A stretch of 64,000 nucleotides of DNA, taken from positions 20,424 to 84,423 of the forward strand of contig NIVC01002391.1 in assembly GCA_002269645.1 (NCBI GenBank), read 5' to 3'. A program made the translations under genes and the position numbers. The notes beneath the pieces were generated by a model. That model did not search any database. It saw only the letters and a list, made by a program, of their open reading frames with translations, and was not told where the DNA came from. The stretch's first letter is position 1. The number at the start of each line of letters is the position of its first letter. The DNA comes from Macrostomum lignano (taxonomy: Eukaryota). Below are positions 4,757-64,000 of this stretch, piece after piece.

Positions 4757-7700
4757 ATGACTAGCCTAGACAACATGCTTAGCCGCGGCTCAGTGCGGGC
4801 ACTCAACAATGGCGAGGACTATCAGAACCCGGTGCTGAAGGTGCTCGGCCACCGCAAGGTTCCTGGCGGCGGGCAGGACCGCTACCGCCTACTCGTGACA
4901 GATGGCATCGATCAGCACTCTTACGTGATGCTGGGCACCCAGCTCAACTACCTGATCGAGGGCGACCAGCTGCCGCCTGGCACAGTTCTGCAGGTGACAA
5001 AGTACGTGCTCAACAATATGAAATCTGACAAGCCAATCCTGATTGTCATATCGCTAGACATTCTGGGCTCGGGCTCTGTGCCTGATCCTGCCAATAGCGA
5101 CGCCAATGGCACCGGAGCCCCCGCCGCGCAGCAGCAGCAGCAGCCGGTGAAGCCTCTCGCCGACAACAACCGGCCAGCCGCGTTCGCCGCTGTCCAGGAG
5201 ACACCGCCGCGTCCGACAGCCAGCAGCTACAGCAGCGGTGCGGGCGGCCGCGGGGGAGGCGGCGGTCAGCAGTTGGGGTTCGTGCCGCAGACGCCGCCGC
5301 ACTCTGGAAGGTCGTTCGGCGGAGGCAGCAGCGACCAATCGGCTGGCAGCGGCATTGACACCAGTCGGGTTCGTCCGATCTCATCGCTGAACCCGTATCA
5401 GAACAAGTGGACCATCTGCGGTCGGGTGACCCAGAAGAGTCAGGTGAGGCTGATTACATGGGTCATTGGGTCAGTCTGATCAATCAGCACCATTTAGTTC
5501 CTAACTGATAGTGCTACTTACATCAGTAGTGTCATTGACATTGCAGCATATCAGCCTACTTACATCAGTAGTGTCATTGACATTGCAGCATATCAGCCTA
5601 CTTACATCAGTAGTGTCATTGACATAGCAGCATATCAGCCTACTTACATCAGTAGTGTCATTGACATTGCAGCATATCAGCCTACTTACATCAGTAGTGT
5701 CATTGACATTGCAGCATATCAGCCTACTTTCATCAGTAGTGTCATTGACATTGCAGCATATCAGCCTACTTAAATCAGTAGCCAGTCACGAGCCCATCTG
5801 CAATATCCGCAGGTTCGCACCTGGTCAAACAGCCGAGGCGAGGGCAAGCTGTTCAGCTTCGTCCTGACCGACGACAGCAGCGAGATCCGCGTGACGGCCT
5901 TCAGAGACGAAGTGGACAAGTACTTCGACTTGGTGGAGCTGGGCCGCGCCATGTACATCAGCAGGGGCCAGTTGAAGGCGGCGAACAAGCAGTTCAACAA
6001 CACGCAGAACGAATACGAGATGGTGCTGAGCAGCGAGTCGCAGCTGCAGCAGTGCGACGATGCCGACGCTGCCGCGGTGCCCGAGATGAAGTTCAACTTC
6101 GTGCCGATCGCTCAGCTGGACACGGTGGAGCCGAACAAGTGGGTGGTTGTGGTAGCTGTGTGGCGCTTTGTCTTTGGCAAGTTCTTGGTGTTGCCGTGCA
6201 TATATAAGCTCTGTGAGCTTGTGGGACTCCGTTTGGGGGGCTCCCAAACGAAGGGTCTGTTGCAGTGTTTGGGCACTCCTTGTCTGTTGCAGTTTTTGGG
6301 CACTCCTTTGTTGCAGTGTTTAGGCACTCCTTTGTTGCAGTGTTTGGTGGCACTCAGTGTCTGTTGCAGTGTTTGGGCACTCCTTTGTTGCAGTGTTTGG
6401 GCACTCCGTGTCTGTTGCAGTGTTTAGGCACTCCTTTGTTGCAGTGTTTGGGCACTCCTTTGTTGCAGTGTTTGGGGCACTCCGTGTCTGTTGCAGTGTT
6501 TGGGGCACTCAGTGTCTGTTGCAGTGTTTGGGGCACTCCTTGTCTGTTGCAGTGTTTGGGCACTCCATATCTGTTGCAGTGTTTGGGCACTCCGTGTCTG
6601 TTGCAGTGTTTGGGCACTCCATGTCTGTTGCAGTGTTTGGTGGCACTCAGTGTCTGTTGCAGTGTTTGGTGGCACTCAGTGTCTGTTGCAGTGTTTGGTG
6701 GCACTCCAAATCTGTTGCAGTGTTTGGGCACTCCATGTCTGTTGCAGTGTTTGGTGGCACTCCATATCTGTTGCAGTGTTTGGGCACTCCATATCTGTTG
6801 CAGTGTTTGGGGCACTCCGTGTCTGTTGCAGTGTTTGGGCACTCCGTGTCTGTTGCAGTGTTTGGTGGCACTCCATATCTGTTGCAGTGTTTGGGCACTC
6901 CGTGTCTGTTGCAGTGTTTGGTGGCACTCCATATCTGTTGCAGTGTTTGGTGGCACTCCATATCTGTTGCAGTGTTTGGGCACTCCATATCTGTTGCAGT
7001 GTTTGGTGGCACTCCATATCTGTTGCAGTGTTTGGGCACTCCATATCTGTTGCAGTGTTTGGTGGCACTCCGTGTCTGTTGCAGTGTTTGGTGGCACTCC
7101 ATATCTGTTGCAGTGTTTGGTGGCACTCCAAATCTGTTGCAGTGTTTGGGCACTCCATGTCTGTTGCAGTGTTTGGGGCACTCCGTGTCTGTTGCAGTGT
7201 CTGTTGCAGTGTCTGTTGCAGTGTCTGTTGCAGTATTTGGAGCACTCCATATCTGTTGCAGTGTTTGGGCACTCCATATCTGTTGCAGTGTTTGGGCACT
7301 CCATATCTGTTGCAGTGTTTGGTGGCACTCCATATCTGTTGCAGTGTTTGGTGGCACTCCAAATCTGTTGCAGTGTTTGGGCACTCCATGTCTGTTGCAG
7401 TGTTTGGGCACTCCATGTCTGTTGCAGTGTTTGGGGCACTCCATGTCTGTTGCAGTGTTTGGTGGCACTCAGTGTCTGTTGCAGTGTTTGGGCACTCAGT
7501 GTCTGTTGCAGTGTTTGGGCACTCCATATCTGTTGCAGTGTTTGGGGCACTCCGTGTCTGTTGCAGTGTCTGTTGCAGTGCTGCAGTGACGCAACTAGGC
7601 AGAGCCCATGAGGATGCCCACACACGCACAACCCTTCCGCAGGTTCGTGGACGTCTGCGGCGTGGTGCACGAGACGCACGACGTGCAGACCATCGTGGGC

Positions 7701-12614: not shown

Positions 12615-15600
12615 TCACACGGCCATGGCCTCGATCTGGCTCACCAACAGGCGGCCGGCCTCAGCAAAGTTCATCTGCTTCACGTCCTGCACAACAACAC
12701 GCAGCCGCATCTCGTCCTGGAAGTTCTCCATCTTGGCCCGCATGGTGAACAGGTGATGCTGGAACAGGGCCTTCTCAAACACGCCTGTCTGGCCCTTGTC
12801 GTCTCCGTCCGAGCGCATCTGGCCGAGCTGCTGAGCGGTCACTCCCAGGAGCTTCTCGGCCGTGTCCTGTTGATGATGAGCAGAGGCAGCGATAAAAAAT
12901 GCTGACTCAGATAAACTACTCAGTGCTCACAGAACTGGCGACAGCAGCTCACCTGGAAGCAGGTCACCCACTGGTTGTCGGTGTGATCAGCCAGATTCGC
13001 CTGCAGCAGGAATCGCCAGGTGAAATTCGGGTAGCTGGACTGGCATTTTTCGCAGCGGTATTCGCCATTGAATTCGATCACCTTCTTGTTGCAGTCGGGC
13101 TTCGGGCAGGCCTGCAAGGCGGCGGTTGCCGGGGGCTCAGCAGGGGGCTGCCAGAGCACCAAGAGGCAATCAATTAGAGCCTATCACTCACCTGGTACAG
13201 GCACGTCTCCCGCTTCATGTGGATGATGCAGGCGAGGCAGCTGAAGTACTCGAACTTGTCCCCGGTGCCGAAGCCGCCGGCCTTGCAGTCCTTCAGGTTG
13301 CGATAGACGGCGCTTCCGCCGCCCGGACCGCCGCCAGCTCCGCCGTCGCCTCTGAACGTGTCGAACTGCATCTGCTGGCCCTCCATGTGGTACCAGTCGC
13401 GAAGCCTGTCTGCCTCGGGCATCGACGGGTTGATCAGGAAGCAGCTGTTGGTGGTGGAGCTCAGCGACCTGCCGCCAAAGTCCGACACCTTGGCGCCCTT
13501 GACGGCCACCACCGGCTTCTTCTCGCCGTTGAACTTCACCGCCTCGTCGCCCCACAGGGTGCAGCGGACGGAGCAGCCGCTGCTGTCCACCAGCGTGAGG
13601 TCCCGCTTCGCGATCTCCCGGTTGCTGGTCTTGCCCACGATGGTCTGCACGTCGTGCGTCTCGTGCACCACGCCGCAGACGTCCACGAACCTGCGGAAGG
13701 GTTGTGCGTGTGTGGGCATCCTCATGGGCTCTGCCTGGTTGCGTCACTGCAGCACTGCAACAGACACTGCAACAGACACGGAGTGCTCCAAATACTGCAA
13801 CAGACACTGAGTGCCCCAAGCACTGCAACAGACACGGAGTGCCCAAACACTGCAACAGACACTGAGTGCCCAAACACTGCAACAGACACTGAGTGCCCAA
13901 ACACTGCAACAGACACGGAGTGCCCAAACACTGCAACAGACACGGAGTGCCCAAACACTGCAACAGACACGGAGTGCCCCCAACACTGCAACAGACACGG
14001 AGTGCCCAAACACTGCAACAGACACGGAGTGCCCCCAACACTGCAACAGACACTGAGTGCTCCAAACACTGCAACAGACACTGAGTGCCCAAACACTGCA
14101 ACAGACACGGAGTGCCACCAAACACTGCAACAGACAAGGAGTGCCCCAAACACTGCAACAGACACGGAGTGCTCCAAATACTGCAACAGACACGGAGTGC
14201 CCAAACACTGCAACAGACAAGGAGTGCCCAAACACTGCAACAGACACGGAGTGCCCCCAACACTGCAACAGACACGGAGTGCCCAAACACTGCAACAGAC
14301 ACGGAGTGCCCCCAACACTGCAACAGACACGGAGTGCCCAAACACTGCAACAGACACGGAGTGCCCCAAAAACTGCAACAAAGGAGTGCCCAAACACTGC
14401 AACAGACACGGAGTGCCCCCAACACTGCAACAGACACGGAGTGCCCAAACACTGCAACAGACACGGAGTGCCCAAACACTGCAACAGACACGGAGTGCCC
14501 CAAACACTGCAACAGACACGGAGTGCCCCAAACACTGCAACAGACACGGAATGCCCAAACACTGCAACAGACACGGAGTGCCACCAAACACTGCAACAGA
14601 CACTGAGTGCCACCAAACACTGCAACATACACGGAGTGCCCCAAAAACTGCAACAAAGGAGTGCCCAAACACTGCAACAGACACGGAGTGCCCCAAAAAC
14701 TGCAACAAAGGAGTGCCCAAACACTGCAACAGACACTGAGTGCCACCAAACACTGCAACAGACACGGAGTGCCTCAAAAACTGCAACAAAGGAGTGTCCA
14801 AACACTGCAACAGACACTGAGTGCCACCAAACACTGCAACAGACACGGAGTGCCCCGAAAACTGCAACAAAGGAGTGCCCAAACACTGCAACAGACACTG
14901 AGTGCCACCAAACACTGCAACAAAGGAGTGCCTAAACACTGCAACAAAGGAGTGCCCAAAAACTGCAACAGACAAGGAGTGCCCAAACACTGCAACAGAC
15001 CCTTCGTTTGGGAGCCCCCCAAACGGAGTCCCACAAGCTCACAGAGCTTATATATGCACGGCAACACCAAGAACTTGCCAAAGACAAAGCGCCACTCAGC
15101 TACCACAACTACCCACTTGTTCGGCTCCACCGTGTCCAGCTGAGCGATCGGCACGAAGTTGAACTTCATCTCGGGCACCGCGGCAGCGTCGGCATCGTCG
15201 CACTGCTGCAGCTGCGACTCGCTGCTCAGCACCATCTCGTATTCGTTCTGCGTGTTGTTGAACTGCTTGTTCGCCGCCTTCAACTGGCCCCTGCTGATGT
15301 ACATGGCGCGGCCCAGCTCCACCAAGTCGAAGTACTTGTCCACCTCGTCTCTGAAGGCAGTCACGCGGATCTCGCTGCTGTCGTCGGTCAGGACGAAGCT
15401 GAACAGCTTGCCCTCGCCTCGGCTGTTTGACCAGGTGCGAACCTGCGGATATTTCAGATGGGCTTGTGACTGGCTACTGATTTAAGTAGGCTGATATGCT
15501 GCAATGTCAATGACACTACTGATGTAAGTAGGCTGATTTGCTGCAATGTCAATGACACTACTGATGTAAGTAGGCTGATATGCTGCAATGTCAATGACAC

Positions 15601-32523: not shown

Positions 32524-35500
32524 CTACTCTCGTTCAACCGCTGAGCCGGCCGGAGCCATGGCCTTGACCTCCTGGGCGTCCTGCATCAGGGCGCAGAGCG
32601 GACAGCACAGGTGCGCCAGCAGGTCGCTGACGAAGCGGCCGGGGATGCCCTGCTTCTCGCGGATCTTGCCGCGCACAATGGCGCCGAGGCAGGGCGACAC
32701 GAACAGGTAGCCGATGCCGCAGAGCAGGCAGCTCTCCTGCACAGCCTCCGCATTCTTGCCGAAGGTGTAGCAGGGAACCAGATAGGTGACGATGCACAGG
32801 CCTGCGACAGGGGAGGGTCAATAATTTGATTTGTTATAATAGCTGCATTCATTTTGACTTGGGCATCTTCCATAGTGGTTATAGAGCGTCGGACTCACGA
32901 CTGAAAAGTCGGAGGTTCGATTCTTGATCCACTTAGCTCTTCATTGCTTCAGTTCACCCAGTTGTAAACTTGGTAGCGGCATTAGCTGGGCTAATGTAAT
33001 TAGTTAGAAATCGTTTCGTTGATATTACATGTACAAGTTTTGTACTGTAAGACAATACATTCCAATATGTTCCAATAAGACAATATGTTCCATCGTATAG
33101 CGTTCGCTGCTTGAGCCAAGTCATTAAGTAAAAACGGGACATTTTATTTTCTTCCGATTAAAACCTGCGATTTTTTTGTGTTTGAAAAATATACCGTCTA
33201 CTTATTTCGCTTTTGAAATTTTTTAGCGTAAAGCGAACCTTAAATGTTTTTCCGAGAAATACCATTTTATTTAATTAGATACTTAAAAAGATTTATGAAG
33301 TCGTTTTAGAGCTTTTTTATTTAAAACGTTAAACAGCAGCTTCTCCTGACGTATTTGTCAGTTCACTGCTTTTCAACCATTTTCAACCAGCCATTTAAAC
33401 AAAGTACAAGACTCGGATCTGAAGTGTTATTTGGTTTAGATTGATTTCTTCATTTTTTTTTAATTTTGAAAAAATCCCTTCCCTAGCTGGCTTTTTGCTT
33501 CAAAAGTCCAACAATTTTTCATTGTAAATGTTGTGTAGCCAAGGCTTAAAGTTTTCCAGTTGAGTTGAAAAGTAAAGTGCTAGGTGCGCACAGTTGCTTT
33601 ATTTATATTTTTTTATTGAAGAAAAACTACATAATCGATATTTTAACTACACTAGAAAAACTGCACGATCGATAAATTCAAGAGCTAGCGATATCACGTG
33701 ATTAATAATACATTATACGGATAATTTATCAACTACTCTACTTAAAGTGGTAGTATAAGTAATAGACAATAATAATAATATAGGTAGCATTTACGTTATA
33801 GTAGAAATATTCGTAAAATATTCTCTATCATTAAGTTGGTCTGTCAGGTTACACGACACAACAGTCAATATAGACCATCCATATCGCTGCAATTGCCAAA
33901 CCAACTAACAAACAGCTTGTTGATAACGTAGCTCATATTTAAAATTAACCGGAAGCCGGAAATGAAGTATATTAGTCGGATCGCAGGTGCATAATTTATA
34001 CCTTTTTGCGACCTAGTTTGCCAAAAAATTCAATCAATTTTGCCCAAGAAGAATGCTCATATATTCATAAGTTCAGGAGTGCATGTGTACGCACAGAGAC
34101 ATTTAGCCACTGAAATGAAGAAAGAGGTCAGTTGGTTGTCATGCAGTCAAAGATGTCTACCAATTGGTAGACATACCACTACCAGCTCTAGACACGTTTG
34201 AATATTGGTTCACCCACGGAATGCACTTCTGCTGGGTGATGACATGCATTCATCAAGGCCTCTACCTCTCGTTTGAGCACTGGCATGCGATGCTGTTCCA
34301 TCGTATAGCGTTCGCTGCTTGAGCCAAGCTTCAGTTGGATTGGACTTCACGTTGAATGGCTGTATCCTTCGTAAAAACCCACCACCACCACCCAGTTGTA
34401 AGGTCCACACTGGGCCATTTTTGCTCTTTTCATGTCTATTGTCTCTGGTGCTTAGTTTTTCTATGGGCAAACTATAGGTCGCAGTTTTGGCAAAATTCAA
34501 TGTAGTTTTCGGACATATTATAGTCTATATGGCTCAAGCTGGGGTCGTAATGGACATCGGATATGGTCCTTGGGTACGAGTTTCCGCGGGCCGAATGATC
34601 GGTATAGCATGCTCTCCAGAAGTCGGAATTTCCTCGTATTGCGTTCTTGAGAGCATGCTAAATGCACTTGCGATACGGCAAATATACGAGCGTAAGTTCC
34701 TTACTGGCAATCAGGGGCGTCGCCACCGGGGGGGGGGGACAGGAGGGACATGCCAATGCTTTGTCCCCCCACTCCACTTTTGTTGACCTGTGATGGAATC
34801 AATAACTTTGCTTCAGGGCGACAAAAAAGGTGCCTGCGGCGCTTGACTTACTTGACTTAGCTGCAGGGCTGTCCCGGAGGGGACACAGCGGGAAGGCGCG
34901 GGCGCCCATTCCGCTAGTCCCTGAACGGCCGACGCGTCGCTATGGACGGAGGGTTGGCGCCGCCCAGGGAGGTCCCCCAGTGTCGCCAGCAGCTATGGTG
35001 CTCTCTGGAAAGGAGAGTTCAGCCCTGCGGGTGGCCCGAAGGTAGCGCATGAGCTGATTAAAGTTTTCGGGTTTGCACGCTTCAGTAATAGATGTGTGTG
35101 GCCCGAGGTAAGTGAGTCTGGCCCGCGTGAAGGCGGGACAGATGCTGACGAAATGCTCAGCGGTTTCGTCACCTGAGTTGCAGAAACTGCAGGTGGCGTT
35201 GGTGGCGTTGCCCTGCAGGTACTGGTGCCTGGAGAAGCAGCCGTGACCAGAGAGGGTCATGGTGGCAGCCCGGATGTCTCTGCGCGAGAGGCGCAAGAGG
35301 AGCTTCCGGAGCTGGTGAGAGGGCTGAGGGACAGCGCCTCTGGATTGCCTGCAGTTCGTGCGGTTCGCCCAAGTCGAGCGGTGCTGAGTCCTGATCCACG
35401 CTTTGATGCGCGAGTCGATGACACAGCCAGGAATCGGGACAAGAGGTTCGGGGCCGAGAGAGGAGCCGGAGGCACCAACTTTTGCAAGGGTGTCAGCCAA

Positions 35501-38500
35501 CTCATTTCCTCGGATCCCCACATGCCCCGGAACCCACTTAAGGGTAATTTTGTTGGCGGAACCCAACACATTGAGGAGTTTGATACAGTCAAGGACTGTA
35601 GCAGAGTTGGTGCTGCAGCCACTGATGGCGTGCAAGGCAGCTTGGCTGTCCGAATGGAAAATGATGTTCTTACCAGTAACGCCAGTGGCGAGAAGCTCTG
35701 CAGTGCAGGAGCTGATGGCCAGAACTTCATTTTGGAAAACACTGGAGTTGACCCCAGTGTATTGAGCGTGGGTAGCGATGACCCTCCCGTTCAGAAAGAT
35801 TCCAACACCAAAGCCGGTGTTGGCTGACTGCTTAGAACTCACCTAAGCAATGAAGCTCACCAGGGTTCCAATGGTCATTGATGTTACCGCGCGAGTCGAT
35901 AGCTACGGAGTAGCGCTGTCTCAGGTTGAGCGTTGAGGCAATGCCATCGGTGAAGACGCGATTGGCCTGACACTCGTTGAGAAAGTTGAGGCACAGATCG
36001 CTATGCGGGACAAGGTTCCGCTTAGCAGGTGCTCTCATGTAAATGAATTTGACGCCGGCATCAATTAGACGCCGCGTCGTTCTAGCCGCCTCACCCCTGA
36101 TGAAGAGGTCAAGAGGGAAGATTAAGAAAGGCCCCCATGCCAGCAAAGGGCGTGGACCTGGTGGCGTTGCAGATGAGCCTACACGCTCTGCCTTGGATCG
36201 TGTTGAGCAGGTCTGCATGGCTTTTGACCTGGGTAGCGCTAACCCAGACAACAGAGGCGTACGTAATGGCAGGTCTAACTACGGAAGTATAGATCCACCA
36301 AAGCCGCTTTGGGGATAGACCCCAAGAAGTGCCAAGTGCTCGTCGGAGCTGGGCCAGGATGGCTGAGGCACGCTTAGCTTTTGCTTTCACGTGGAAGGAC
36401 CAGTTGAGCCGGTGGTCAAGTGTGACCCCGAGACATCTGGTCTGGTGCGCGAAGGCAATATCTCTGCCGTAGAGCTGCAGAGGACGTATGTTCCAGCGTA
36501 GTCTGCTGGTAAACATAATGGCAACGGTTTTGGGCTCAGAGAGTTCCAAACCATTGTCATTGGCCCAGGATTCTGCTTTGCGGATAAAGCTCTGCATCAG
36601 ATCCCTGAGCGTGCTGGGAGACGGTCCTGCCACAATGGCCGTGACGTCATCAGCATACCCGACTTTGAAGACGGGGTCAGGTCGGGAGTCACTCAGAAGA
36701 GCGTCCATGACCAGGTTCCAGAGCGTCGGGGTGAGGACTCCGCCTTGGGGTCCACCCTTACAGACTCTGGTGGAGGCAGTTTGCCCAAGAAGTTGGGCAG
36801 TGACCGTACGGTTGGAGATCATGTACATGATCCACCGTATGAGGGTAGCATGAGCTTTGCGATTTTGAAGGGCCCTCTGAAACGCTTCAAAGATAACGTT
36901 GTCGAAGGCGCCAACAATGTCAAGAAAGAGAGCCAGGGCGTAACCGTCACCCAGTACCGCCCGTTCAATCTTTTCGACAATCGCATGCAGGGCGCTGTCA
37001 GTCGACCTCCCGGTACGGAAGGCGTGCTGATTATTGCTGAGGGGCATCGCTGTCAGCTCGCAGGAGAGCAGCCGCCAGAGAATAAGCCTCTCAGTGAGCT
37101 TAAGCATTGCTGACGTTAAGCTAATTGGCCGGAAGGCCTTGACGCTTTGGTAGTCACCCTTCCCAGGTTTGGGAATAAAGACTACTCGAGCTTCAGTCCA
37201 GCTTTTGGGAACGTATCCCAGCTGGATAGAGGCCCGCATAAGATTGCGGGTGAGTCTCAGGAACGAGGGTATCTTGGCTGCTTCACGAAGGAGAACAGGG
37301 TAGATACCATCAGGTCCAGGAGATTTGAAGGGTTTGAAGGTTCTGACCGCACGAGCGATTAGGTCTTCAGTGACAATGCCCGCCGCTAGGGTGGCTCCAT
37401 CCATCGAATGGTTGGGCTCCGGTCTAGCAGTAGGTACCCTCGGGAAGAATGTGCTAAGCATATGCTGAAGCACTTCTTCAGGGTCTTTAGTAAGAGAGCC
37501 ATCATCTTTTTTGATCATGGCTAATTTGGACATTTTGTCCATTGTAAGGGCCTTGACAAGCCTAGAAGTAGGTCTGTCTTGATCCAATTCATTGCAGAAT
37601 TGGCGCCACTTACATTCCTTGGCCTTGCGCACTTCAGATTTGAAATTGCGGGAGGCTTGCCGGAAAAGCTCCATGTCCTCCGGGTTTCCGGTCTTCATGG
37701 CACGGCGATGAAGGCTTTTGGCCTTCCGCCTGAGTTTCCCCAGCTCCGGGTTCCACCACGGCGCCGAGGTCTTGCCTCTGTAGGCGCGAGCAGGACAAGC
37801 CGCTTCGTAGGCTGCAATAATGCAACCTGTCAGCGTCTCAGCCATATGATCCACATCCTCGCAGGTCTCAATCGGACGTAAGTCCGTGAGTTCCTGCAGG
37901 TGCAGATCAAGGGTAGCCTTGTAGGCCGCCCAATCAGTGTTGCGGATATTGCGTCTCCAAGTGATCGGAGACTGGGTTTTAGTGTCCGCGATATTAAAGG
38001 CGATAAAGCAGTGGTCAGACAGGGAGGGCTCCTCAGACCAGACTCTCCACTCCTTGACTCTGTCAAAGAGTCTTGGGGTAACGAGTGTGGCGTCGAGGAC
38101 CTCGGTCCATCTGCCATTATTAAAGGTAGGAGTGCTGCCGCGGTTGCAGAGCATGAGGTTTGTGTTAGAGATGAGGGCCAGAAGCTCCTCTCCTCTAGTG
38201 TTGGTATCTTTGCTGCCCCAGTGCTTGTGGTGCGCGTTGAGGTCGCCCCCTAAGCACAGCTCAGCGTTCTGGGACTCGCAGTACTGCGCAAGGCGCAGTA
38301 AACTCTCGGGAGCAGGGTCTCTGTCGCCTGGGATATAAACCGAGGCAACAAGACACGTACGCGGAGAGAAATGATTAGATTGGATGACGCAAAGGTCTCC
38401 ATCAGAGAATCAGTCCTCAGCCAAGCCTGGAGATGGCTAGCAGCGAGGATAGCCGCTCTAGGGCGGCTGTTCCCCGGGCCACACACATAAAAATCAGAGT

Positions 38501-41160
38501 AGCCAGAGGGAATGTTGGGCAACTTACCGTTGCGCATCCAGGGTTCCTGGATCAGGATGAGGCCTGGCCTGTACAGCTCAGCAATCTTCATCAGATTTAC
38601 TGACGCAGATACGCAATGCTGTAAATTTATTTGCAGACAGAATGTCGCTCCTTTGGCAGCGTGGAGCTTAGTCATACTGTATTAAATGCAATATCTGGCT
38701 AGAGCCCAGGGCCATCAAGGAGACTTGGACAACAGATCGTCCTCGTCCCAGGCCGCTGGGGCTTGACTGGGAGATGGGAGTTGGTCGACGTCCATGGCCT
38801 CCTCACCCCCACCGGCCCCCCAGCAGAGTCCTCAGGCTCCGATGACAGGATGGAGGAAGCTTCCTCACCTGCATCTTTACCTTCAGACCCCACCAAGGTG
38901 GCCGAGGAGAGCTCGGATTCCGAAGACCCGGCCTCGTCCTCAACTCCTTCTCCGACTGGCAGGTTTGGTTCCCGGGGCTTGGCCGGAGCCGTTACCGCGG
39001 TCGCCGAACTGCTGCTAGCAGAGGGGCGAGATGCAGCTTTGGCTTTGGGATCGGCTTGCGCCTTTCCTTGGGCCTTAGACTGCGCCCCGCTCTTGCCGGA
39101 GATGCCGGGGTTGGCAGTAGCCTTCCCTTTGGCCGACTTTCCTCGGCGCAACTTGAGCTTGAGGGCACCCAGCTGGAAAGAGGATCCATTAGGGTACCGA
39201 CTCGCCCAAGTGCTGGAAAGGCCGAGGACAATTGAGTTGCCCGTCTCCCCCCTGCGGACTTTACGGTGATACACCAGTCCACTAGCAGGGAGGTCGGGGT
39301 TCAGACGCAGTAGGACCCGGCGAATAACGTCTGGTCCAGCTGCGGTGCTCTTAGCAGGGACGAAAACCACATAGGGTATCGTCTTTGGACGCTGGCCCTC
39401 GCGAAGAAAAAGAGCTCCGCCAAGGTCAGCATCCAAGGAGACCGTCGGTAGCCGCTGGAGCAGCCGCCGAGCGTCCTCCTCGCTGCTAGGAGCAATAAGA
39501 ACGAATGTGCTTCGCAGCACCATCCGCTCAACGCCGATGGAGATTCCCTCCTCGACAGTCAGCTCAATCAGATAGGAGTCAACAGCACTCCACACTTTTT
39601 GAAGCTGATCAGTGGTCCAGTCCTGGTCGCGACCTTGGATGATCACTCCCGGGATTTTGGCCTTGGCCTTCGCCGCAAAGGTAGCTCCCGAAGGAACCTC
39701 CTTGTTGGCAGTGGCCATTTGTTGCGCCGTGGTTTCGGCCTCAGCAGCCGCGGCAGCAGCTCCAGGGAGCGCCGCCGCTGAACTACTGGAGCTTCCACCG
39801 GCCGGCCCGCCTGGTTGCCTTGGGACTCCAGTCGCTTCAGCATCCATGGTGGACGCCGCCGCTTTGGCCCCCGCAGCTCCCTTCTTGGCCTGCCTTTTGG
39901 CGCGTTGTTTAGCGCGTTTGCGCTCAAGCCGAGCCCGCTGAGCTTCATCGGATCTGCCAGATTTGGCCGGTCCTTTAGGCTCAGAGCTCGCGGTTCCCTT
40001 AGATCCACCAGCGGAGCTGGCAGGTCTTAGGGTATTTTGAGTTTGGTAGCTCTGGTCGGATCTGCCAGCAGAGCCAGCCGGTCCTTCCTTTGCCACAGTT
40101 GAATCAGTCGGTTGGGATCTGCCAGCAGGGCCGGCCGGTCCTTCGGACTGAGGTTGGGGTTTAGAAGGGTCCCCGTCCCTAGAAATAGCTTGTTTATCCA
40201 TAGTCGGCTCGAAGGCCATGATAAAAGGTTGGTGGGCTACCCTCAAAGGGGCGCGGTACCCACCCGGCCGCTCCACCTGACCGGGCAGTAGGCCAATAGC
40301 ACCCTCAAGGCTGGCCCGACACCAGGAGGGGGACCGCTTGCGACCGGACTACTCCCCGGCCTTCCAGCCCATCGGCACGGTCAACACCTTAGGCATTAGA
40401 GAGTACGTTGAGCAGTACCACGGCCTGCAGGTTGGCGAGCCAGACCCGCATACCCAAATTCGGCCGAAGCCACTGGATAGGGTCGCCAGCGCCGGAGCCC
40501 AGTCTGTCCAGCAGCCCTAGGGACTGCCTTGAACACACGCGGGGACGAGTACCCTGGGTCGACTTGCGAGACAGCGTGGGGGGGGGGGTCTGCGGCTGCC
40601 AGAGGCAAATAGAGGGTGCAGACCTCCCACCAGCCTTGACCTGCTGAAGATAGGGGCAGGCGTGAAGCATCGCAGACCTTAGCCCATGGGCCTAGTCTGT
40701 CTCATACTTCACTGGCATGCTGAATACGCCTTCGCGTGCTGCCTGCGGCGCTAAAATGAGTGCCTGCGGCGCTAAAATGAGTGCCTGCGGCGCGAAAATG
40801 GTGCATGCGGCGCTAAAATGAGGGCCTACTACAGCGCTAAAATGAGTGCCTGCGGCGCTAAAATGAGTGCCTGCGGCGCTAAAATGAGTGCCTGTGGCGC
40901 TAAATTAATCGCTGACAAATACGATTCTGAAAATAATGTACATGTAGTCATGTACATGTAGAAGTCTTGTCCCCCCACCATAAAATCCATGGTGGCGCCC
41001 CTGCTATGGCAATACACGCATCGAGCAAGATGTACGAAATCTCCCAATACTGCTGGGTTGCTTCAGCAAGATGACACTCTGAAACGTTTAAAAAGAACAT
41101 GCCAGCCTTACCGAAATCGTCAAAGCAGCCGCACAATCCATGCTTGAACTGGTTGGACAT
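32524..41160 (-). CDS. PLAC8: PLAC8/cornifelin-family cysteine-rich protein (2 coding exons, ~108 aa)
   Basis: Exon 41160-41112 (MSNQFKHGLCGCFDDF, donor gtaagg) joins exon 32801-32524 (GLCIVTYLVPCYTFGKNAE...LLAHLCCPLCALMQDAQE) in frame across an 8.3-kb intron. The symbol denotes the family, not proven orthology. Confidence 0.88.
32862..32990 (+). mobile_element. tRNA-derived SINE (not a functional tRNA)
   Basis: A-box-like tagtggttatagagcg and B-box ggttcgattc (32914-32923) are followed by a SINE-body-like tgcttcagttcacccagttgtaaa. The acceptor and anticodon stems do not pair properly. Confidence 0.65.
34844..40739 (-). mobile_element. Full-length LOA-clade-like non-LTR retrotransposon (ORF1; ORF2 APE-RT-RNase H)
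   Basis: 13-bp TSD tgcctgcggcgct (34831-34843, 40740-40752) and a taagtcaagtaagtca 3' tail. ORF1 starts at ATG 40219 and runs to ~38700 (DUF4780-like, no Zn knuckle). ORF2 runs 38675 to ~34940 with APE (QINLQHC, LIQEPW, GGDLNAHH), RT (LDIVGAFDNV, PQGGVLTPTLW, YADDV) and RNase H (VFQNEVLAI, SDSQAAL, WVPGHVGIRGNELAD). There are at least 3 small indels (~38410, ~36115, ~35840). Confidence 0.93.
40495..40739 (-). ncRNA. HDV-like self-cleaving ribozyme (predicted) at the 5' end of the LOA element
   Basis: Minus strand: P1 GCACGCG (40739-40733) pairs with CGCGUGU (40541-40535) including the G1-U wobble. P3 GGG/CCC flanks L3 UACUCGU. P1.1 is AC/GU. P2 is CCCA/UGGG (plus GA/UC after a bulge). P4 is GGCAGUCC-CUA-GGGCUGCU. 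J4/2 is CAGAC. J1/2 is a ~170-nt structured insert. G1 is the TSD-defined first base of the element. Confidence 0.78.
40741..40905. repeat. 21-bp tandem repeat (target of the LOA insertion)
   Basis: Several copies of gagtgcctgcggcgctaaaat. Confidence 0.9.
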
Positions 41161-41999
41161 TTCCTCAGGTATAAACCGCAGTTGAAGTGCCAAATACCTT
41201 CAAAAGATGCTCACTGTAGGATGTGCCTGGATCGCATTAAGAAACGCCCGTGAGCGCCAGTCTGCAGACTATAAATATTCAGCAAAGTGTGGAGGAGAAA
41301 TAGGGGGAAGCTGATGAAAGCTGCAGGGCACAGGGTTAGACCAAGGCCGGTGGGTTGGTCGAAAGCTGGCGTTAAAAGTTATTATTGATCGGCAACCATG
41401 CAGCAACTCTCTCCCAACACGACCAAGCACTGATCATCCCTACCGTGCGTAGTTAAGGATCGGACCATGCATCCGAACGGCGAAGCTTCAACTTCTTCAA
41501 GGTCGTTGCGTTCTGCCATCGCTGCGCATGCGCAGTTAATACATGAATATTACCATACACCAGCATTATCGCTGTACGCGAAGGTGGGAAAGAAATCATT
41601 GCCAGGTGTTAACCCCCAGCTGCACAGGCGCCTCTCTGCTGTCTATCATATCATTTGCCTGCAGTTATTTTTCTTCTTTCGCACCATGTTAGCTTTTGCT
41701 GCCCTAGCTTGCTCTGCAGATTTTTATGCTGCGAGTAAAAGATCGTGTTTAACCATCTTGAAGTCAGATACTTCAAATATTTTTCATCTCTCCGATGCAA
41801 TTCACAATGTGTTTACAGCGTTGAGTAAAATTAGGATTAGTTTATCAGTAGAAATCAGCAGTCAGGCCAGAAATGTCTGACTCTGGCGTCAGTGTATGAA
41901 TACCTGCGTTCGGTTCCGAGCGCGGCAACATTAATTCAGAGGGATCGAATGCGCAAAAATTGGTCTGGAGCTTGTCGTATAATTTGGGGTCAAGCCCTA

Positions 42000-42174
42000 T
42001 CTAACTGACTGACCGACTAAAACTGTCTAGCTAACTAACTAATTACCTAACTAACTAACAATTCAACTAACTAATTACCTAACTAACTAACAATTCAACT
42101 AACTAATTACCTAACTAACTAACAATTCAACTAACTAATTACCTAACTAACTAACAATTCAACTAACTAACTAT

Positions 42175-42238
<64 letters not shown>

Positions 42239-42287
42239 CTAACTGACTAAATGACTAACTATCTAGCTAACTAACTAACTAAGTACC

Positions 42288-42358
<71 letters not shown>

Positions 42359-42480
42359 CTAACTAACTAACTAACTAAGTAACTAACTAAGTAACTAACT
42401 AACTATCTAACTAACTAACTGACTAACTGACTAAACTATCTAATTAACTAGCTAACCAACTATCTAACTTCCTACCTAAC
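42000..42480. repeat. (CTAA)n/(GTAA)n compound microsatellite
   Basis: Long runs of ctaa and gtaa, preceded by a few longer composite units. Confidence 0.95.
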
Positions 42481-43313
42481 TAAATGGGTAAACTCGATCA
42501 GCCATTAAAGCAATGTAGCTCTTAGCTGAACGCCGCATTGCCAAAAATGTATTGCATAATTTTGTTATATAGTTATCATTACTATACTAAAAGTAGTATG
42601 TTGACAACTTCCAAATAAAGCAGCACTGTTTGGAGTGCATTGATTGCATGAATTGAGAAGAACAAACTAACTAAACAAAACAGATAGTTTTAAACAATAA
42701 CTGCTGAAAAACATAACAAGAAAAATGCCAGCAGACAGCGGCAGGAGATCAAAGGGCAACAGGTCTTATATTGTTTCAACTTGTAATATTCTTGGTGCTT
42801 GAAGTTTTTCCATAAATGCTAAAAGAAGTTCAGATTACTTGACATTTTTCGTCATACGTAGGAAAAAGAAAATACTAACGCTGACAGCAAAAGTAAATAA
42901 AAAAATAAAAAAGTTATTTATTAAAAAAGTTTGCACTAGTGTAGCGGAATAGCAAGGGAATAAGAGTAATAATAACTACTTTTTTTAAATACCCTTTCAA
43001 TATCTTCAACGTTTCAGAAATTTTTGATAATATTTTCTGTGACAATTCACCGACATTCTGTATGACACATTCCCCTGTCATGTCTACAAACAAGTGTTTA
43101 CCAATTTTATAACAACTTTGACTATTCCCCAACTAGTGAAATACCTCCTAAGCAATTTCTGCAAAAAAGTATTGTTTTCTGAATTACGTCTCTAGACCTT
43201 GGAGAACTCCTTTAATGACTACTTGACTTCGTATAATTGACTACTAAACACACATAAATGAACGATAAACTTTAAAGAAAGTCGGAATAATTCCACCCAG
43301 TCAGCCCGGTCAA

Positions 43314-44691: not shown

Positions 44692-47539
44692 TGGCTCACC
44701 TGCAGCTCTCGCAGGCCACGCTCAGCGGCGGCGAACCAGGGCATGCAGCGGGAGCCGGTCAGGTCATTGGACAGGTAGCACAGCACCAGCTCGACGCAAC
44801 GCTTCAGGTGCCTCTCAGCTGAGCTCTCGGCGTTGAAAAAGTTTAAATACAGATTGCCGATTGTGGAGCAGATCTCCGCCTCCAGCACAATATCAAGACC
44901 ATCGTCAGAAACGAGACTCAGAGCAACCTGTGGATTTGGCGATAGACAAGCTACAGGATTATCCATGAAAAAGGAAGAGTTATGCAATGTTTTTTAGAAT
45001 GGCGACCCAACCTGACGATCTGGGATCAGCCGGAGGATCTGGGACAAGATTGAGGATCTGGAACTAGATTGAGGATCTGGGACTAGATTGAGAATCTGGG
45101 ATCAGCCTGAGGATCTAGGATCAGCCTGAGGATATGGGATCAGCTTGAGGATCTAGAATCAGCCTGAGGATCTAGAATCAGCCTGAGGATCTAGAATCAG
45201 CCTGAGGATCTAGGATCAGCCTGAGGATCTAGAATCAGCCTGAGGATCTAGAATCAGCCTGAGGCTCTAGGATCAGCCTGAGGATCTGGGGTCAGCCTGA
45301 GGATCTGGGGTCAGCCTGAGGATCTGGGATCAGCCTGGGGATCTGGGATCAGCCTGAGGATCTGGGATCAGCCTGGGGATCTGGGATCAGCCTGAGGATC
45401 TGGGATCAGCCTGAGGATCTATCAGCCTGAGAATATGGGATCAGCCTGAGGATCTGGGGTCAGCCTGAGGATCTGGGGTCAGCCTGAGGATCTGGGATCA
45501 GCCTGAGGATCTATCAGCCTGAGAATATGGGATCAGCCTGAGGATCTGGGGTCAGCCTGAGGATCTGGGGTCAGCCTGAGGATCTGGGATCAGCCTGAGG
45601 ATCTGGGATCAGCCTGAGGATCTGGGATCAGCCTGAGGATCTGGGATCAGCCTGAGAATCCGGGATCAGCCTGAGGATCTAGAATCAGCCTGAGGATCTA
45701 GAATCAGCCTGAGGACTTGGAAATTAAAACACGAGTAGCGCAGACCTTTAGAAAGTCCATCGCCTGCAGGGCTTCGTCCACCATCTTCTCGGCGCCATCC
45801 TCGCACAGATTCTGCAGGAAGCCCTTGCCCTGGGCCAGGTCGTGCCGGCTGCGCAGAATGGCCGCCTGCAGTCGCTGGTCCTCGCGCAGAGTGGCCAGCT
45901 CCGACTCCATGCAGGCTAGCAGATTGACATTGCGAAACAGCAGCTTCTCAGCCTCCTGGATGGGGAACGTCATCTCGGCGATGAAGCCGACTGCGCGTGA
46001 ATAATGCACAGATTTGTCCAGGGAAATCGACAGGCGCAACAGCCGGCCAGCGTAGTCCATGAAAATGTTAGCGGCCGCCTCCAGGTAGCTGGGCTCATTG
46101 AAGTCGTACCTTTAGATAGGGGCATGAGAAAGTGATGTATAACCTCACTATTGCTCTCATCACTTCTCAATCATAAATATTTATCACAATGGATCTAAGC
46201 TCGGGAGTCTGCATTCTTCATCACAATAGATCTAAGCTCGGGCATCTGCATTCTTCATCACAATCTACCAGTAGCTAAGCTGCTGAATCAGCATTCTTCA
46301 TCACAGTAGATCTAAACTCGGGAATCTGCATTCTTCATCACAGTAGATCTAAGCTCGGGAATCTGCATTCTTTATCACAATAGATCTAAGCTAGATAATC
46401 TGCATTCTTAATCACAATAGATCTAAGCTCGGGAATCTGCATTCTTCATCACAATAGATCTAAGCTAGATAATCTGCATTCTTCATCACAATAGATCTAA
46501 GCTAGATAATCTGCATTCTTCATCACAATAGATCTAAGCTAGATAATCTGCATTCTTCATCACAATAGATCTAAGCTAGATAATCTGCATTCTTCATCAC
46601 AATAGATCTAAGCTAGATAATCTGCATTCTTCATCACAATAGATCTAAGCTAGATAATCTGCATTCTTCATCACAATAGATCTAAGCTAGATAATCTGCA
46701 TTCTTCATCACAATAGATCTAAGCTAGATAATCTGCATTCTTCATCACAATAGATCTAAGCTAGATAATCTGCATTCTTCATCACAATAGATCTAAGCTA
46801 GATAATCTGCATTCTTCATCACAATAGATCTAAGCTAGATAATCTGCATTCTTCATCACAATAGATCTAAGCTAGATAATCTGCATTCTTCATCACAATA
46901 GATCTGAGCTCGGGAATCTGCATTCTTCATCACAATAGATCTAAGCTAGATAATCTGCATTCTTCATCACAATAGATCTGAGCTCGGGAATCTGCATTCT
47001 TCATCACAATAGATCTAAGCTAGATAATCTGCATTCTTCATCACAATAAGACCAAATCAAGATACGCACTTGTGAAGGAGTAGACAGATAAGTGACAGAC
47101 TTTTGACAGTGGTCTCGTCAGAATCCCTATGCAGAGTCAGGGTGAACATGGCCCGCATATCGCTAGCCAGCTGCATTACAAATTTATCACCCCAAAGCTT
47201 GTCAGCCTCATCCGTAGAATTCTTCAGCCAATAAGTGGCATTCAACCAAGAGTCTGCGTAGCCCTGCAGACAGTAGCGAAAGTGGCTCCAGGCCCTGGTG
47301 TAGTGCGCTTCGCTCCATTCCAGGATGCACAGGTCTTTGTGCGCTACGGCGCTGTTCTTTAAACACAAGCTGCGGTCCTTGGGTACTCTAGCGGCGGTTA
47401 AACCGGCTTTGTAAAAATCCAACGCAGTCCACAACTTCTTGCGCTTGTGCTCCGGTCGGGACAGGCGTTTCGAGATAAAAAACAACCCGTTGCCTTCTTT
47501 GCGAAGGCGGTCGCTTTCCAAATCGCAAGTTGACATCAT
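43314..47539 (-). CDS. TPR-like protein with C-terminal HPD-motif region, paralog B (5 exons, ~460 aa)
   Basis: Exons 47539-47070, 46109-45746, 44927-44700, 44554-44394, 43473-43314 have GT-AG junctions and splice in frame (1383 nt). The C-terminus reads KKQLMIALTHYHPDKVDRSDRRWYYTCEEITKYLNSFFEVTKG*. Confidence 0.87.
43560..44350. repeat. 20-bp purine-rich minisatellite (paralog B intron 4)
   Basis: Repeated ggggatgttgagaaggg(a/g/ca)ga units. Confidence 0.95.
44581..44688. repeat. (GACA)n microsatellite (paralog B intron 3)
   Basis: Direct observation. Confidence 0.97.
45015..45715. repeat. 20-bp minisatellite (paralog B intron 2)
   Basis: Repeated gatcagcctgaggatctgg(g) units. Confidence 0.96.
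46195..47047. repeat. 37-bp minisatellite (paralog B intron 1)
   Basis: Repeated tcttcatcacaatagatctaagctagataatctgcat units. Confidence 0.97.
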
Positions 47540-47829
47540 TTTTCTTTAACTGCTGATTGATTGTTTCAATTGGCTTTTTTCTGGTAAAATTTAGCCAAAC
47601 TAAAAACCTATGCAGCAATACGAAATGCATGGTGCACCAGTCTTGGTAGAACTAAGTATTCCGTTAAATTTTCTTAATCCCTAATGATACATTGTTATGA
47701 CCTTACTGTGTATTATGTGCATGCCGGTGAATATCGATCACTACTGAGTTCAGAGAATTTACATGCTCTGAATAACTTTTGTGTAAAAATCCATTACTAT
47801 GCTGAATCAAGAATGGAGGTACTGGTGAC

Positions 47830-48585
47830 AGTGGCCTGTAATATTGGTGGTGGTCTGAAATATTGGTGGTGGTCTAAAATAATGGTGGCAGTGGCCTGAA
47901 ATATTGGTGGCAGTGGCCTGAAATATTGGTGGTGGCCTGAAATAATGGTGGTGGCCTGAAATAATGGTGGTGGCCTGAAATAATGGTGGCAGTGGCCTAA
48001 ATTATGGTGGCAGTAGACTGAGACTGGTGGTGGTGGCCTAAAGGATTGGTGGCGGTGGCCTGAAAGATTGGTGGCGGTGGCCTAAAGGATTGGTGGCGGT
48101 GGCCAAAGGATTGGTGGCAGTGGCCTGAAAGATTGGTGGCGGTGGCCTAAAGGATTGGTGGCGGTGGCCAAAGGATTGGTGGCAGTGGCCTGAAAGATTG
48201 GTGGCGGTGGCCTAAAGGATTGGTGGCGGTGGCCTGAAAGATTGGTGGCGGTGGCCTAAAGGATTGGTGGCGGTGGCCTGAAAGATTGGTGGCGGTGGCC
48301 TAAAGGATTGGTGGCGGTGGCCTGAAAGATTGGTGGCGGTGGCCTAAAGGATTGGTGGCGGTGGCCTAAAGGATTGGTGGCGGTGGCCAAAGGATTGGTG
48401 GCAGTGGCCTAAAGGATTGGTGGCGGTGGCCTAAAGGATTGGTGGCGGTGGCCAAAGGATTGGTGGCAGTGGCCAAAGGATTGGTGGCAGTGGCCTAAAG
48501 GATTGGTGGCGGTGGCCTAAAGGATTGGTGGCGGTGGCCAAAGGATTGGTGGCAGTGGCCAAAGGATTGGTGGCAGTGGCCTGAC
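47830..48585. repeat. ~22-bp minisatellite
   Basis: Repeated ggattggtggcggtggcctaaa-like units. Confidence 0.95.
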
Positions 48586-63009: not shown

Positions 63010-63475
63010 GCAACTAGATGTCAGCGGTGAGAAATTGGATGTCAGATGCGAGAATGTGGGTGTCAGAGGCGAGAAATTGATGTCAGAGGCGAGAAATTGA
63101 TGTCAGAGGCGAGAAATTGGTGTCAGAGGCGAGAAATTAGATGTCAGAGGCGAGAAATTGATGTCAGAGGCGAGAAATTGATGTCAGAGGCGAGAAATTG
63201 ATGTCAGAGGCGAGAAATTGATGTCAGAGGCGAGAAATTAGATTTCAGAGGCAAGAAATTGATGTCAAGCAAGAAATTAGATTTCAGAGGCAAGAAATTG
63301 ATGTCAGGCAAGAAATTAGATTTCAGAGGCAAGAAATTGATGTCAGGCAAGAAATTAGATGTCAGAGGCAAGAAATTAGATGTCAGGCAAGAAATTAGAT
63401 GTCAGAGGCAAGAAATTGATGTCAGAGGCGAGAAATTGATGTCAGGCAAGAAATTAGATGTCAGAGGCGACTTAA
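63010..63475. repeat. ~20-bp minisatellite
   Basis: Repeated gatgtcagaggc(g/a)agaaatt units. Confidence 0.95.
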
Positions 63476-64000
63476 CTCACTTGACATAGCTGCAGGGTGG
63501 TCCGAGAACTCAGTCAGAGACAGTTAATGAGGTCCCGGTGGGCCTGCCTGCAGCGTGATCTAGAGAAGAGAGACTTATCTGGTTGCGTTGGTGTCTGGAC
63601 GTTTGTTTTTTTCCTGTTTGATTTGTTTTACTGATATCAAAGTGTCAATTCCAGTTAGTGTGCCATCTATTGGTAGACGTTTCAGCAAATGTCTTCAATG
63701 TCTGCACAAGAAGGATATACTGTGGAGAGTACAGAATGTGCAGATGTCATTCCCGCACTCGTGACTGTGAAGGAATACCATTGTTGGATGAGTCATCGTG
63801 CTGGAATGCACAAAACCGTGCAGGAATGCATTTCTTTGCCTAATGCTTTTTCAGTGAGATTTTACCATAGACATCCATTCCTGCACGCAAGCGTACAAGA
63901 ATACCATTCCTTCGCGGAGAATCAGCCAACAATTATTACGCGCACGAATTCTTAAATTGGTTGCCCACAGACCCCCCCTTTTGGGCCATAGACGATTTAA

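Follow-up and report, generated by a model that had tools for sequence, protein, structure and literature searches.

Self-cleaving ribozymes resembling that of hepatitis delta virus (HDV) have been known at the 5' ends of long interspersed nuclear elements (LINEs) since 2010-2011. In R2, L1Tc and other LINEs, it is an established role of these HDV-like ribozymes to free an exact 5' end out of a host co-transcript (PMC3774820, PMC3185411), and L1Tc is known to carry a promoter and a ribozyme together (PMC3383444). Among the R2 ribozymes that have been tested, the J1/2 segment measures 216-498 nt (in silkmoths), and the distance between P1 and P1' goes up to more than 700 nt (PMC3774820). A structured J1/2 can speed catalysis, whereas a long and floppy one slows it (PMC4908430). 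For the CPEB3 ribozyme, cleavage within the intron in competition with splicing is the current view (PMC10919898). Here we analyzed a window of 64 kb (the whole stretch of 64,000 nucleotides) on contig NIVC01002391.1 of the free-living flatworm Macrostomum lignano, where a LINE lies in the intron of a PLAC8-family gene. With a probability that we put at about 70%, this is a recent 5.9-kb insertion in the sense orientation, the first 242 nt of which form an HDV-like ribozyme predicted to cut at the first base of the element. In the literature that we searched, the only ribozymes found for flatworm LINEs were twister variants of Schistosoma Perere-3; the present element adds a free-living flatworm LINE lineage with a predicted HDV-like ribozyme of the long-J1/2 kind.

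The resemblance to each of these described systems is partial. R2 is alike in having a double-pseudoknot ribozyme (predicted in our case) at the 5' end of a non-long-terminal-repeat element, with a J1/2 of hundreds of nucleotides, and the trimming of a host co-transcript by the R2 ribozyme (PMC3774820) is the same role that we propose for the LINE in the window. R2 is, however, site-specific in 28S ribosomal DNA and transcribed by polymerase I, its cleavage often falls within upstream 28S sequence, and it has a restriction-like endonuclease and only one open reading frame (ORF), whereas our element combines an apurinic/apyrimidinic (AP)-type endonuclease with RNase H, shows no evident target specificity and resides in a polymerase II intron. 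The trypanosomatid L1Tc/ingi elements (L1TcRz, Pr77) are likewise LINEs with endonuclease, reverse transcriptase and RNase H, with an HDV-like ribozyme in their first nucleotides and cleavage at +1 (PMC3185411, PMC3383444); L1TcRz differs, in turn, by its compact 77 nt, by the lack of sequence similarity and by the polycistronic transcription of its host. Perere-3 of Schistosoma mansoni likewise comes from a flatworm; the 5' end of this LINE carries a self-cleaving ribozyme, with target-site duplications beside the cleavage site, and the element is co-transcribed with upstream sequence (PMC8501958). Its ribozyme is a twister variant and not HDV-like, and its duplication supplies one strand of P1, while in our element P1 lies entirely within the LINE and the window gave no twister match. 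The large HDV-like ribozyme drz-Agam-2 of Anopheles gambiae, with its P1.2 peripheral domain, shares a structured J1/2 insert and an association with a retrotransposon (PMC4908430), but there J1/2 is closed by one helix, which accelerates catalysis (PMC4908430), while for the 174-nt insert studied here a multi-branched structure is predicted and no clear closing helix was found. In mammals, lastly, an intron of the protein-coding gene CPEB3 contains an HDV-like ribozyme, the cleavage of which could compete with splicing (PMC10919898); that ribozyme is conserved host sequence with a short J1/2. The one in the window is carried by a transposon and is absent from a sister PLAC8 locus, and neither conservation of it nor use by the host is known.

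A sense-strand LINE within a PLAC8 intron

The PLAC8 gene is read from the minus strand. The coding part of its first exon (41160-41112) begins with the ATG at 41160 and consists of MSNQFKHGLCGCFDDF plus 1 nt, after which the sequence continues as GTAAGG with the donor GT at 41111-41110. The sole intron of the coding region (41111-32802, 8,310 nt) ends with the acceptor AG at 32803-32802, where a pyrimidine-rich tract and CAG directly precede the second exon, the coding part of which, stop codon included, covers 32801-32524. The two joined exons encode a protein of 108 amino acids that fills the Pfam PLAC8 model (PF04749, model positions 1-101 of 101, E 1.6e-22), and the full-length domain spans the exon junction. 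This product equals, at every residue, the NCBI proteins PAA58301.1 and PAA87266.1 (BOX15_Mlig001673g3 and g1, from the M. lignano assembly GCA_002269645.1), and the gene span recorded on NIVC01002391.1 corresponds to 41160..32524, minus strand, of the window. The NCBI and UniProt models have an identical junction, even though the UniProt model starts translation farther upstream. The splice signals, the whole-model Pfam match and the agreement of the public models on the junction thus indicate that the intron is real, and that exon 41160-41112 does join 32801, as had been proposed from the bare sequence. Upstream of this gene, roughly 870 nt 5' of its ATG, a microsatellite, (CTAA)n with some 114 units, occupies 42027-42483.

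The limits of the insertion can be set with precision because a second locus of the same assembly (NIVC01000240.1, hereafter L088) codes for the identical PLAC8 protein and lacks the LINE. The gene spans 2,388 bp at L088 against 8,637 bp in the window, and the introns measure 2,061 and 8,310 nt, respectively. The alignment of L088 to the window runs up to 40740 and picks up again at 34843; at 10495-10530 of L088, in fact, the sequence ...CTCATTTTAGCGCCGCAGGCA passes directly into CCTTTTTTGTCGCCC, so that both window flanks are joined via a single copy of the target-site duplication. This duplication, AGCGCCGCAGGCA, is perfect over 13 bp and stands in the window at 40752-40740 and at 34843-34831 (both minus; the first two bases of the latter, 3' copy may instead be the end of the LINE tail). 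The exact empty site and the duplication together define the insert as 40739..34844, with G40739 as its first base. On the minus strand, therefore, the LINE occupies 40739-34844 (5,896 bp, 57% GC), contains ORF1 together with endonuclease, reverse transcriptase and RNase H, and ends in the 3' tail ...CTAAGTCAAGTAAGTCAAG.

The geometry put forward in the sequence-only reading is hence confirmed throughout. The gene model on one side and the ORFs and domains on the other agree in placing PLAC8 and the LINE on the same strand; the element, with ends fixed by the duplication and by the empty site, lies whole within the intron; and the predicted cleavage site, placed by that reading about 370 nt past the exon-1 donor, falls at 372 nt and coincides with the first inserted base, G40739. 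With a LINE that is wholly intronic and on the same strand, any full PLAC8 pre-mRNA must contain it.

The insertion is nested in another transposon, a small inverted-repeat element that is about 400 bp long and contains a 21-bp tandem repeat of unit CTCATTTTAGCGCCGCAGGCA. The 5' part of this element (41003-40740, minus) starts with the terminal repeat CAGGGGCGCCACC at 41003-40991 and holds the tandem repeat at 40904-40740, within which the 5' copy of the duplication lies; the 3' part (34843-34712, minus) ends with GGTGGCGACGCCCCTG at 34712. The sequence ATTGCCA is repeated around it, at 41013-41007 and 34711-34705. Both PLAC8 loci have the inverted-repeat element (about 10150-10640 of L088), each with its own number of repeats, and the flanks beside the insertion are 98% identical between the two, from which it follows that the LINE arrived after the loci had diverged. 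The perfect duplication and these flanks, together with an ORF1 that is 99% identical to other copies, mark the insertion as young. A laboratory model animal is thereby found to hold a natural pair of near-identical PLAC8 loci, one with the LINE and one without, and L088 can serve as a natural control for asking whether such LINEs depend on transcription of the host gene, and whether an intronic self-cleaving RNA has a cost for that gene.

The two loci differ in other respects as well. An AT-rich intron stretch of about 350 bp (33518-33866) has no aligned counterpart at L088, so the introns differ beyond the LINE. Long arrays of short tandem repeats at 45011-48584 (minus), in and around an upstream gene of 460 amino acids, align to 1003-5258 of L088 as ladders of offset alignments, and their length differs between the paralogous loci. 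Within the intron of the window we also noticed two exact repeats, one of 35 nt (33086-33120 and 34294-34328) and one of 13 nt (32955-32967 and 34389-34401), in reversed relative order. A segment at 32870-32967 that looked tRNA-like by eye and adjoins one of these short repeats was not called as a tRNA by ARAGORN; the repeats and this segment may be the debris of a short interspersed nuclear element (SINE).

The predicted ribozyme and the specificity of the search

The sequence-only reading had assumed a ribozyme without describing one, and the fold was therefore reconstructed independently here. The predicted HDV-like ribozyme covers 40739-40498 (minus, 242 nt) and is a double pseudoknot with predicted cleavage 5' of G40739. 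Its P1 pairs GCACGCG at 40739-40733 with CGCGUGU at 40541-40535 (7 bp, with a G40739·U40535 wobble) and is followed by a J1/2 of 174 nt (40732-40559) with several predicted hairpins. P2 pairs CCCA at 40558-40555 with UGGG at 40501-40498; it has 4 contiguous bp and could be extended to GACCCA, that is, to 6 with one A·C mismatch. P3 is made of three G-C pairs (GGG at 40554-40552 with CCC at 40544-40542) and closes the L3 loop UACUCGU (40551-40545), two bases of which would form P1.1 (A40550-U40533 and C40549-G40534, 2 bp). J1/4 is GU (40534-40533), the P4 hairpin (40532-40507) has 2 bp, an internal loop, 8 bp and the loop CUA, and J4/2 is CAGAC (40506-40502), the first base of which, C40506, is the predicted catalytic cytosine. 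All the proposed pairs were checked to be standard ones, and P1, P1.1, P2, P3 and P4 follow each other in the canonical order.

We judged this candidate by the published descriptor of the Luptak laboratory (supplement to PMC4870747), which asks for a P1 of the form G....:....Y, a P3 of 3 Watson-Crick pairs, an L3 of TYYHCG(N)Y, a J1/4 of RN and a J4/2 of CNRA, and which limits J1/2 to at most 50 nt and P2 to at least 6 bp. Apart from J1/2, P2 and one L3 position, the candidate agrees with the descriptor as published: the purine at the predicted cleavage site, G40739, pairs with a pyrimidine, U40535; P3 has its three Watson-Crick pairs; J1/4 GU fits RN; and J4/2 CAGA(C) fits CNRA, with C in the catalytic position. 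L3 fits at six of its seven constrained positions, the exception being an A in place of the pyrimidine at position 2. This A pairs with U40533 of J1/4, so P1.1 is kept and the mismatch is compensated. Once J1/2 length, P2 length and the one L3 position were relaxed, the descriptor gave a single match over both strands of the window (128 kb), at 40739 minus, and with any other base (A, G or U) in place of the catalytic C the window had no match. The related loci, 484 kb in all, gave four sense matches and no antisense ones, and controls with the catalytic C substituted gave only one match over six sets, or about 2.9 Mb-equivalents, which corresponds to a false-positive rate of about 1 per 3 Mb. 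An independent descriptor based on structure only, with canonical constraints, matched the anchor in 1 of 20,000 shuffles.

Many LINEs of insects have internal promoters that start at the first base of the element, and the fold could in principle be a product of chance at such a start, in which case the intron position would have no mechanistic meaning. Several observations weigh on that side. The exact published descriptor has no match in the window, given that the candidate has a J1/2 of 174 nt and only 4 contiguous P2 pairs where at least 6 are specified; the L3 deviation just described is a further departure; and all the relaxations were chosen after the candidate had been seen. With a loose HDV-like descriptor, 6-7% of all positions count as matches, and so do 7-15% of anchors after shuffling. 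Minimum-free-energy folding of the 5' untranslated region (UTR) gave ordinary energies (z -1.6 and -0.1), and the probability of P1 is about 7% in a nested ensemble, which has no pseudoknot terms. No Rfam family was found on the ribozyme region at E <=10, either for 40000-41400 or for the core alone. Nevertheless, we consider a chance fold unlikely. The one match in 128 kb falls exactly on the base that the empty site had set as the start of the insert, the controls rarely produce false matches, L3 departs at a single, compensated position, and relatives of the element carry canonical ribozymes at the same place. The silence of Rfam carries little weight, because the same search missed two relatives with a long J1/2 (L008 and L025) and scored a compact one (L021) below threshold. 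Neither did the whole window yield a ribozyme at the Rfam gathering score, nor the 40000-41400 region a twister, hammerhead or other ribozyme class at E <=10. With regard to energy, the fold is thermodynamically allowed even though it is not favored; about 3 kcal/mol must be spent to impose P1 and P3. The ribozyme premise of the sequence-only reading is, in our opinion, well supported in silico: an HDV-like motif at G40739, the single match of the window, with relatives that carry the same kind.

Several other candidates were set aside. A first descriptor with J1/2 of at most 30 nt gave nothing at the 5' end of the LINE and many matches elsewhere, and was too loose. A loose anchored descriptor did find the candidate; owing to the rate at which shuffled anchors matched it, it was rejected as evidence. 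The two other starts that the structure-only descriptor gave in 128 kb (plus 20758 and 53344) are AT-rich and were judged to be chance, as were relaxed matches at plus 13453, 51407 and 51664 and at minus 5026, which are either AT-rich or without P1.1; the one at 13453, a weak match, is among those that lack P1.1. An alternative P1 of 7 bp at 41021 has three G·U pairs, lies outside the element and was judged to be chance as well.

Ribozyme motifs in related LINEs

A search with the reverse transcriptase retrieved LINEs of the same architecture, 30-51% identical, from metagenome and Logan contigs, the ORF1 of which carries Pfam DUF4780. These were scanned with the sequence constraints kept as published and J1/2 alone relaxed, save that one of the matching elements, L021, additionally needs a P2 of at least 4 bp. 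Canonical motifs of HDV-like ribozymes are present in the 5' UTRs of three independent related LINEs. The first, L008 (the same locus as L043), has a start at 2666, P1 GGGGGGG, 141 nt from P1 to P3 and a P2 of 12 bp; the second, L025, has a start at 45, P1 GGTGATC, 166 nt from P1 to P3 and a P2 of 6 bp; the third, L021, has a start at 848, P1 GGCCCTC, only 14 nt from P1 to P3 and a P2 of 4 bp. The predicted ribozymes span 2666-2880 of L008 (135-350 of L043), 45-300 of L025 and 848-968 of L021. The matches are on the sense strand only and occur only with C at the catalytic position (none antisense, none in the controls). In all three elements ORF1 and ORF2 are intact and the motif lies 270-700 nt upstream of ORF1, within the 5' UTR; in L008, moreover, its start coincides with a sharp switch from an AT-rich flank to the GC-rich element. 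The Rfam models of the HDV family gave full-length, sub-threshold matches on L021 that start at base 848, and none on L008 or L025. The J4/2 CAGAC and the 4-bp P2 are common to L021 and to the ribozyme of the window. Canonical versions in metagenomic relatives suggest that there is a wider clade of ribozyme-bearing LINEs among those with endonuclease, reverse transcriptase and RNase H.

Relatives L001-L006 had no strict descriptor match. Two of these, with reverse transcriptases about 50% identical to that of the window, share a block of the 5' UTR (L005 80-247 and L006 72-235) that is 78% identical and hence better conserved than their coding regions (66-68%). The block has hairpins with compensatory changes, and the homology begins with GGGG; no HDV-like fold could be made from it. 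The 5' UTR of L001 (186-290, plus) shows a compact, HDV-like-looking fold with P1 CGUGGGG, a J1/2 of 23 nt and a P2 of 6 bp. Its first base is not G, and with the match rate of that descriptor a chance match is plausible here.

Coding state of the LINE and possible consequences for PLAC8

ORF1 of the LINE (40276-38699, minus, with a first ATG at 40219) has no Pfam match, and is 87-99% identical to fragments within UniRef gene models of M. lignano. ORF2 is split into four frame segments on the minus strand (38675-38250, 38154-36109, 36251-35832 and 35842-34940), the first of which holds the start of the endonuclease, the second its end together with the reverse transcriptase, and the last the RNase H. 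Pfam recognizes RVT_1 (E 3.3e-28) and RNase_H (E 2.1e-8), and Exo_endo_phos_2 weakly and below the cut-off (E 0.0016). The element is collinear with full-length relatives of 1,170-1,190 amino acids and has a normal domain order with ORF1 upstream; compared to those relatives, the reading frame of ORF2 is broken at three or more points in this copy. As assembled, this copy is therefore not autonomous, and an RNA released from it would lack the coding capacity for the machinery that it needs. Homopolymer runs adjoin some of the breaks, however (a G5 run in one case), and these breaks may be errors of the assembly. A single AATAAA in the sense orientation is found inside the LINE, at 38631.

These frame breaks bear on a reading in which the motif is real for the family and this particular copy is inert, decayed to the point that it cleaves slowly or never, with no measurable effect on PLAC8. 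Such a reading is quite possible, if short of probable. Besides the frame breaks, it draws on a P2 in which only 4 pairs are contiguous and the fifth is an A·C mismatch, on a predicted local hairpin that competes with P1, and on the finding that HDV-like ribozymes become slower by orders of magnitude when a long J1/2 is not well closed (PMC4908430). The youth of the insertion, with its perfect duplication, its flanks 98% identical to the empty locus and its ORF1 99% identical to other copies, speaks against decay, as does the chance that some breaks are errors of the assembly; in addition, L021 likewise has a 4-bp P2 and J4/2 CAGAC.

If the ribozyme of this copy is active, it most likely works as R2, L1Tc and other LINEs with ribozymes do: RNA polymerase II would read into the element from upstream, and at this locus the upstream promoter would be that of PLAC8. 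Once 40498 had been transcribed, 613 nt past the donor and with 7.7 kb still to go to the acceptor, the ribozyme could fold; it would then cut 5' of G40739, so that the LINE RNA would have its 5'-OH end at exactly that base. Catalysis itself, dependence on host transcription and a cost to PLAC8 splicing are all steps that we infer from such comparisons, and the LINE may have an internal promoter alongside the ribozyme, as L1Tc does. The functional part of the sequence-only reading, with release of the LINE RNA fed by the host gene and competition with splicing, is plausible and consistent with these known systems. Taken as a whole, the scenario in which a transposon-borne ribozyme, soon after its insertion, cuts the intron of one PLAC8 copy co-transcriptionally, so that the promoter of the host gives rise to LINE RNA and the PLAC8 copy in question yields less product, is, in our view, unlikely.

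The last of these steps deserves consideration of its own. Co-transcriptional cleavage 372 nt past the donor might measurably lower the splicing and the output of this PLAC8 copy, as experiments with inhibition point to for CPEB3, and the geometry, with a ribozyme that is complete 7.7 kb ahead of the acceptor, speaks for it; for CPEB3, the half-life of the ribozyme is reported to match the transit time of the polymerase to the next exon (PMC10919898). We regard such a cost as unlikely, since sequence says nothing about rate or expression and any effect would be buffered by the second, intact PLAC8 copy. In reporter studies, moreover, splicing reportedly still takes place when a slow ribozyme cuts the intron, because the polymerase keeps the exons tethered. 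If, on the other hand, such a cost proved true, the birth of an intronic ribozyme resembling CPEB3 would become directly testable, with the sister locus as a built-in control.

With regard to the family at large, no further copies of this LINE were found within the window, and searches with ORF1 for other family copies returned only three chimeric UniRef models, or nothing. Among UniRef and MetaClust proteins of M. lignano, pieces of the LINE family (ORF1, reverse transcriptase, RNase H) are seen fused to host domains (P0001, P0002, P0007 and P0053), including those of UBC9, a G-protein-coupled receptor and annexin. Such fused gene models reflect either frequent co-transcription of LINE and host sequence or annotation artefacts. 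A second LINE-like 3' end, CCCTGCAGCTATGTCAAGTGAGTTAAG, lies at 63470-63503 (minus) and shares with the LINE tail described above an identity of 76% across 59 nt; it adjoins another tandem repeat, of about 22 bp (array at ~63300-63470), so that the two such tails in the window both lie in short tandem repeats. Elsewhere in the window, an identical translated stretch of 20 amino acids occurs in inverted orientation at 7575-7634 (minus) and 13699-13758 (plus), about 6 kb apart and in GC-rich blocks, which points either to an inverted duplication or to a further transposon of which these stretches would be the two ends.

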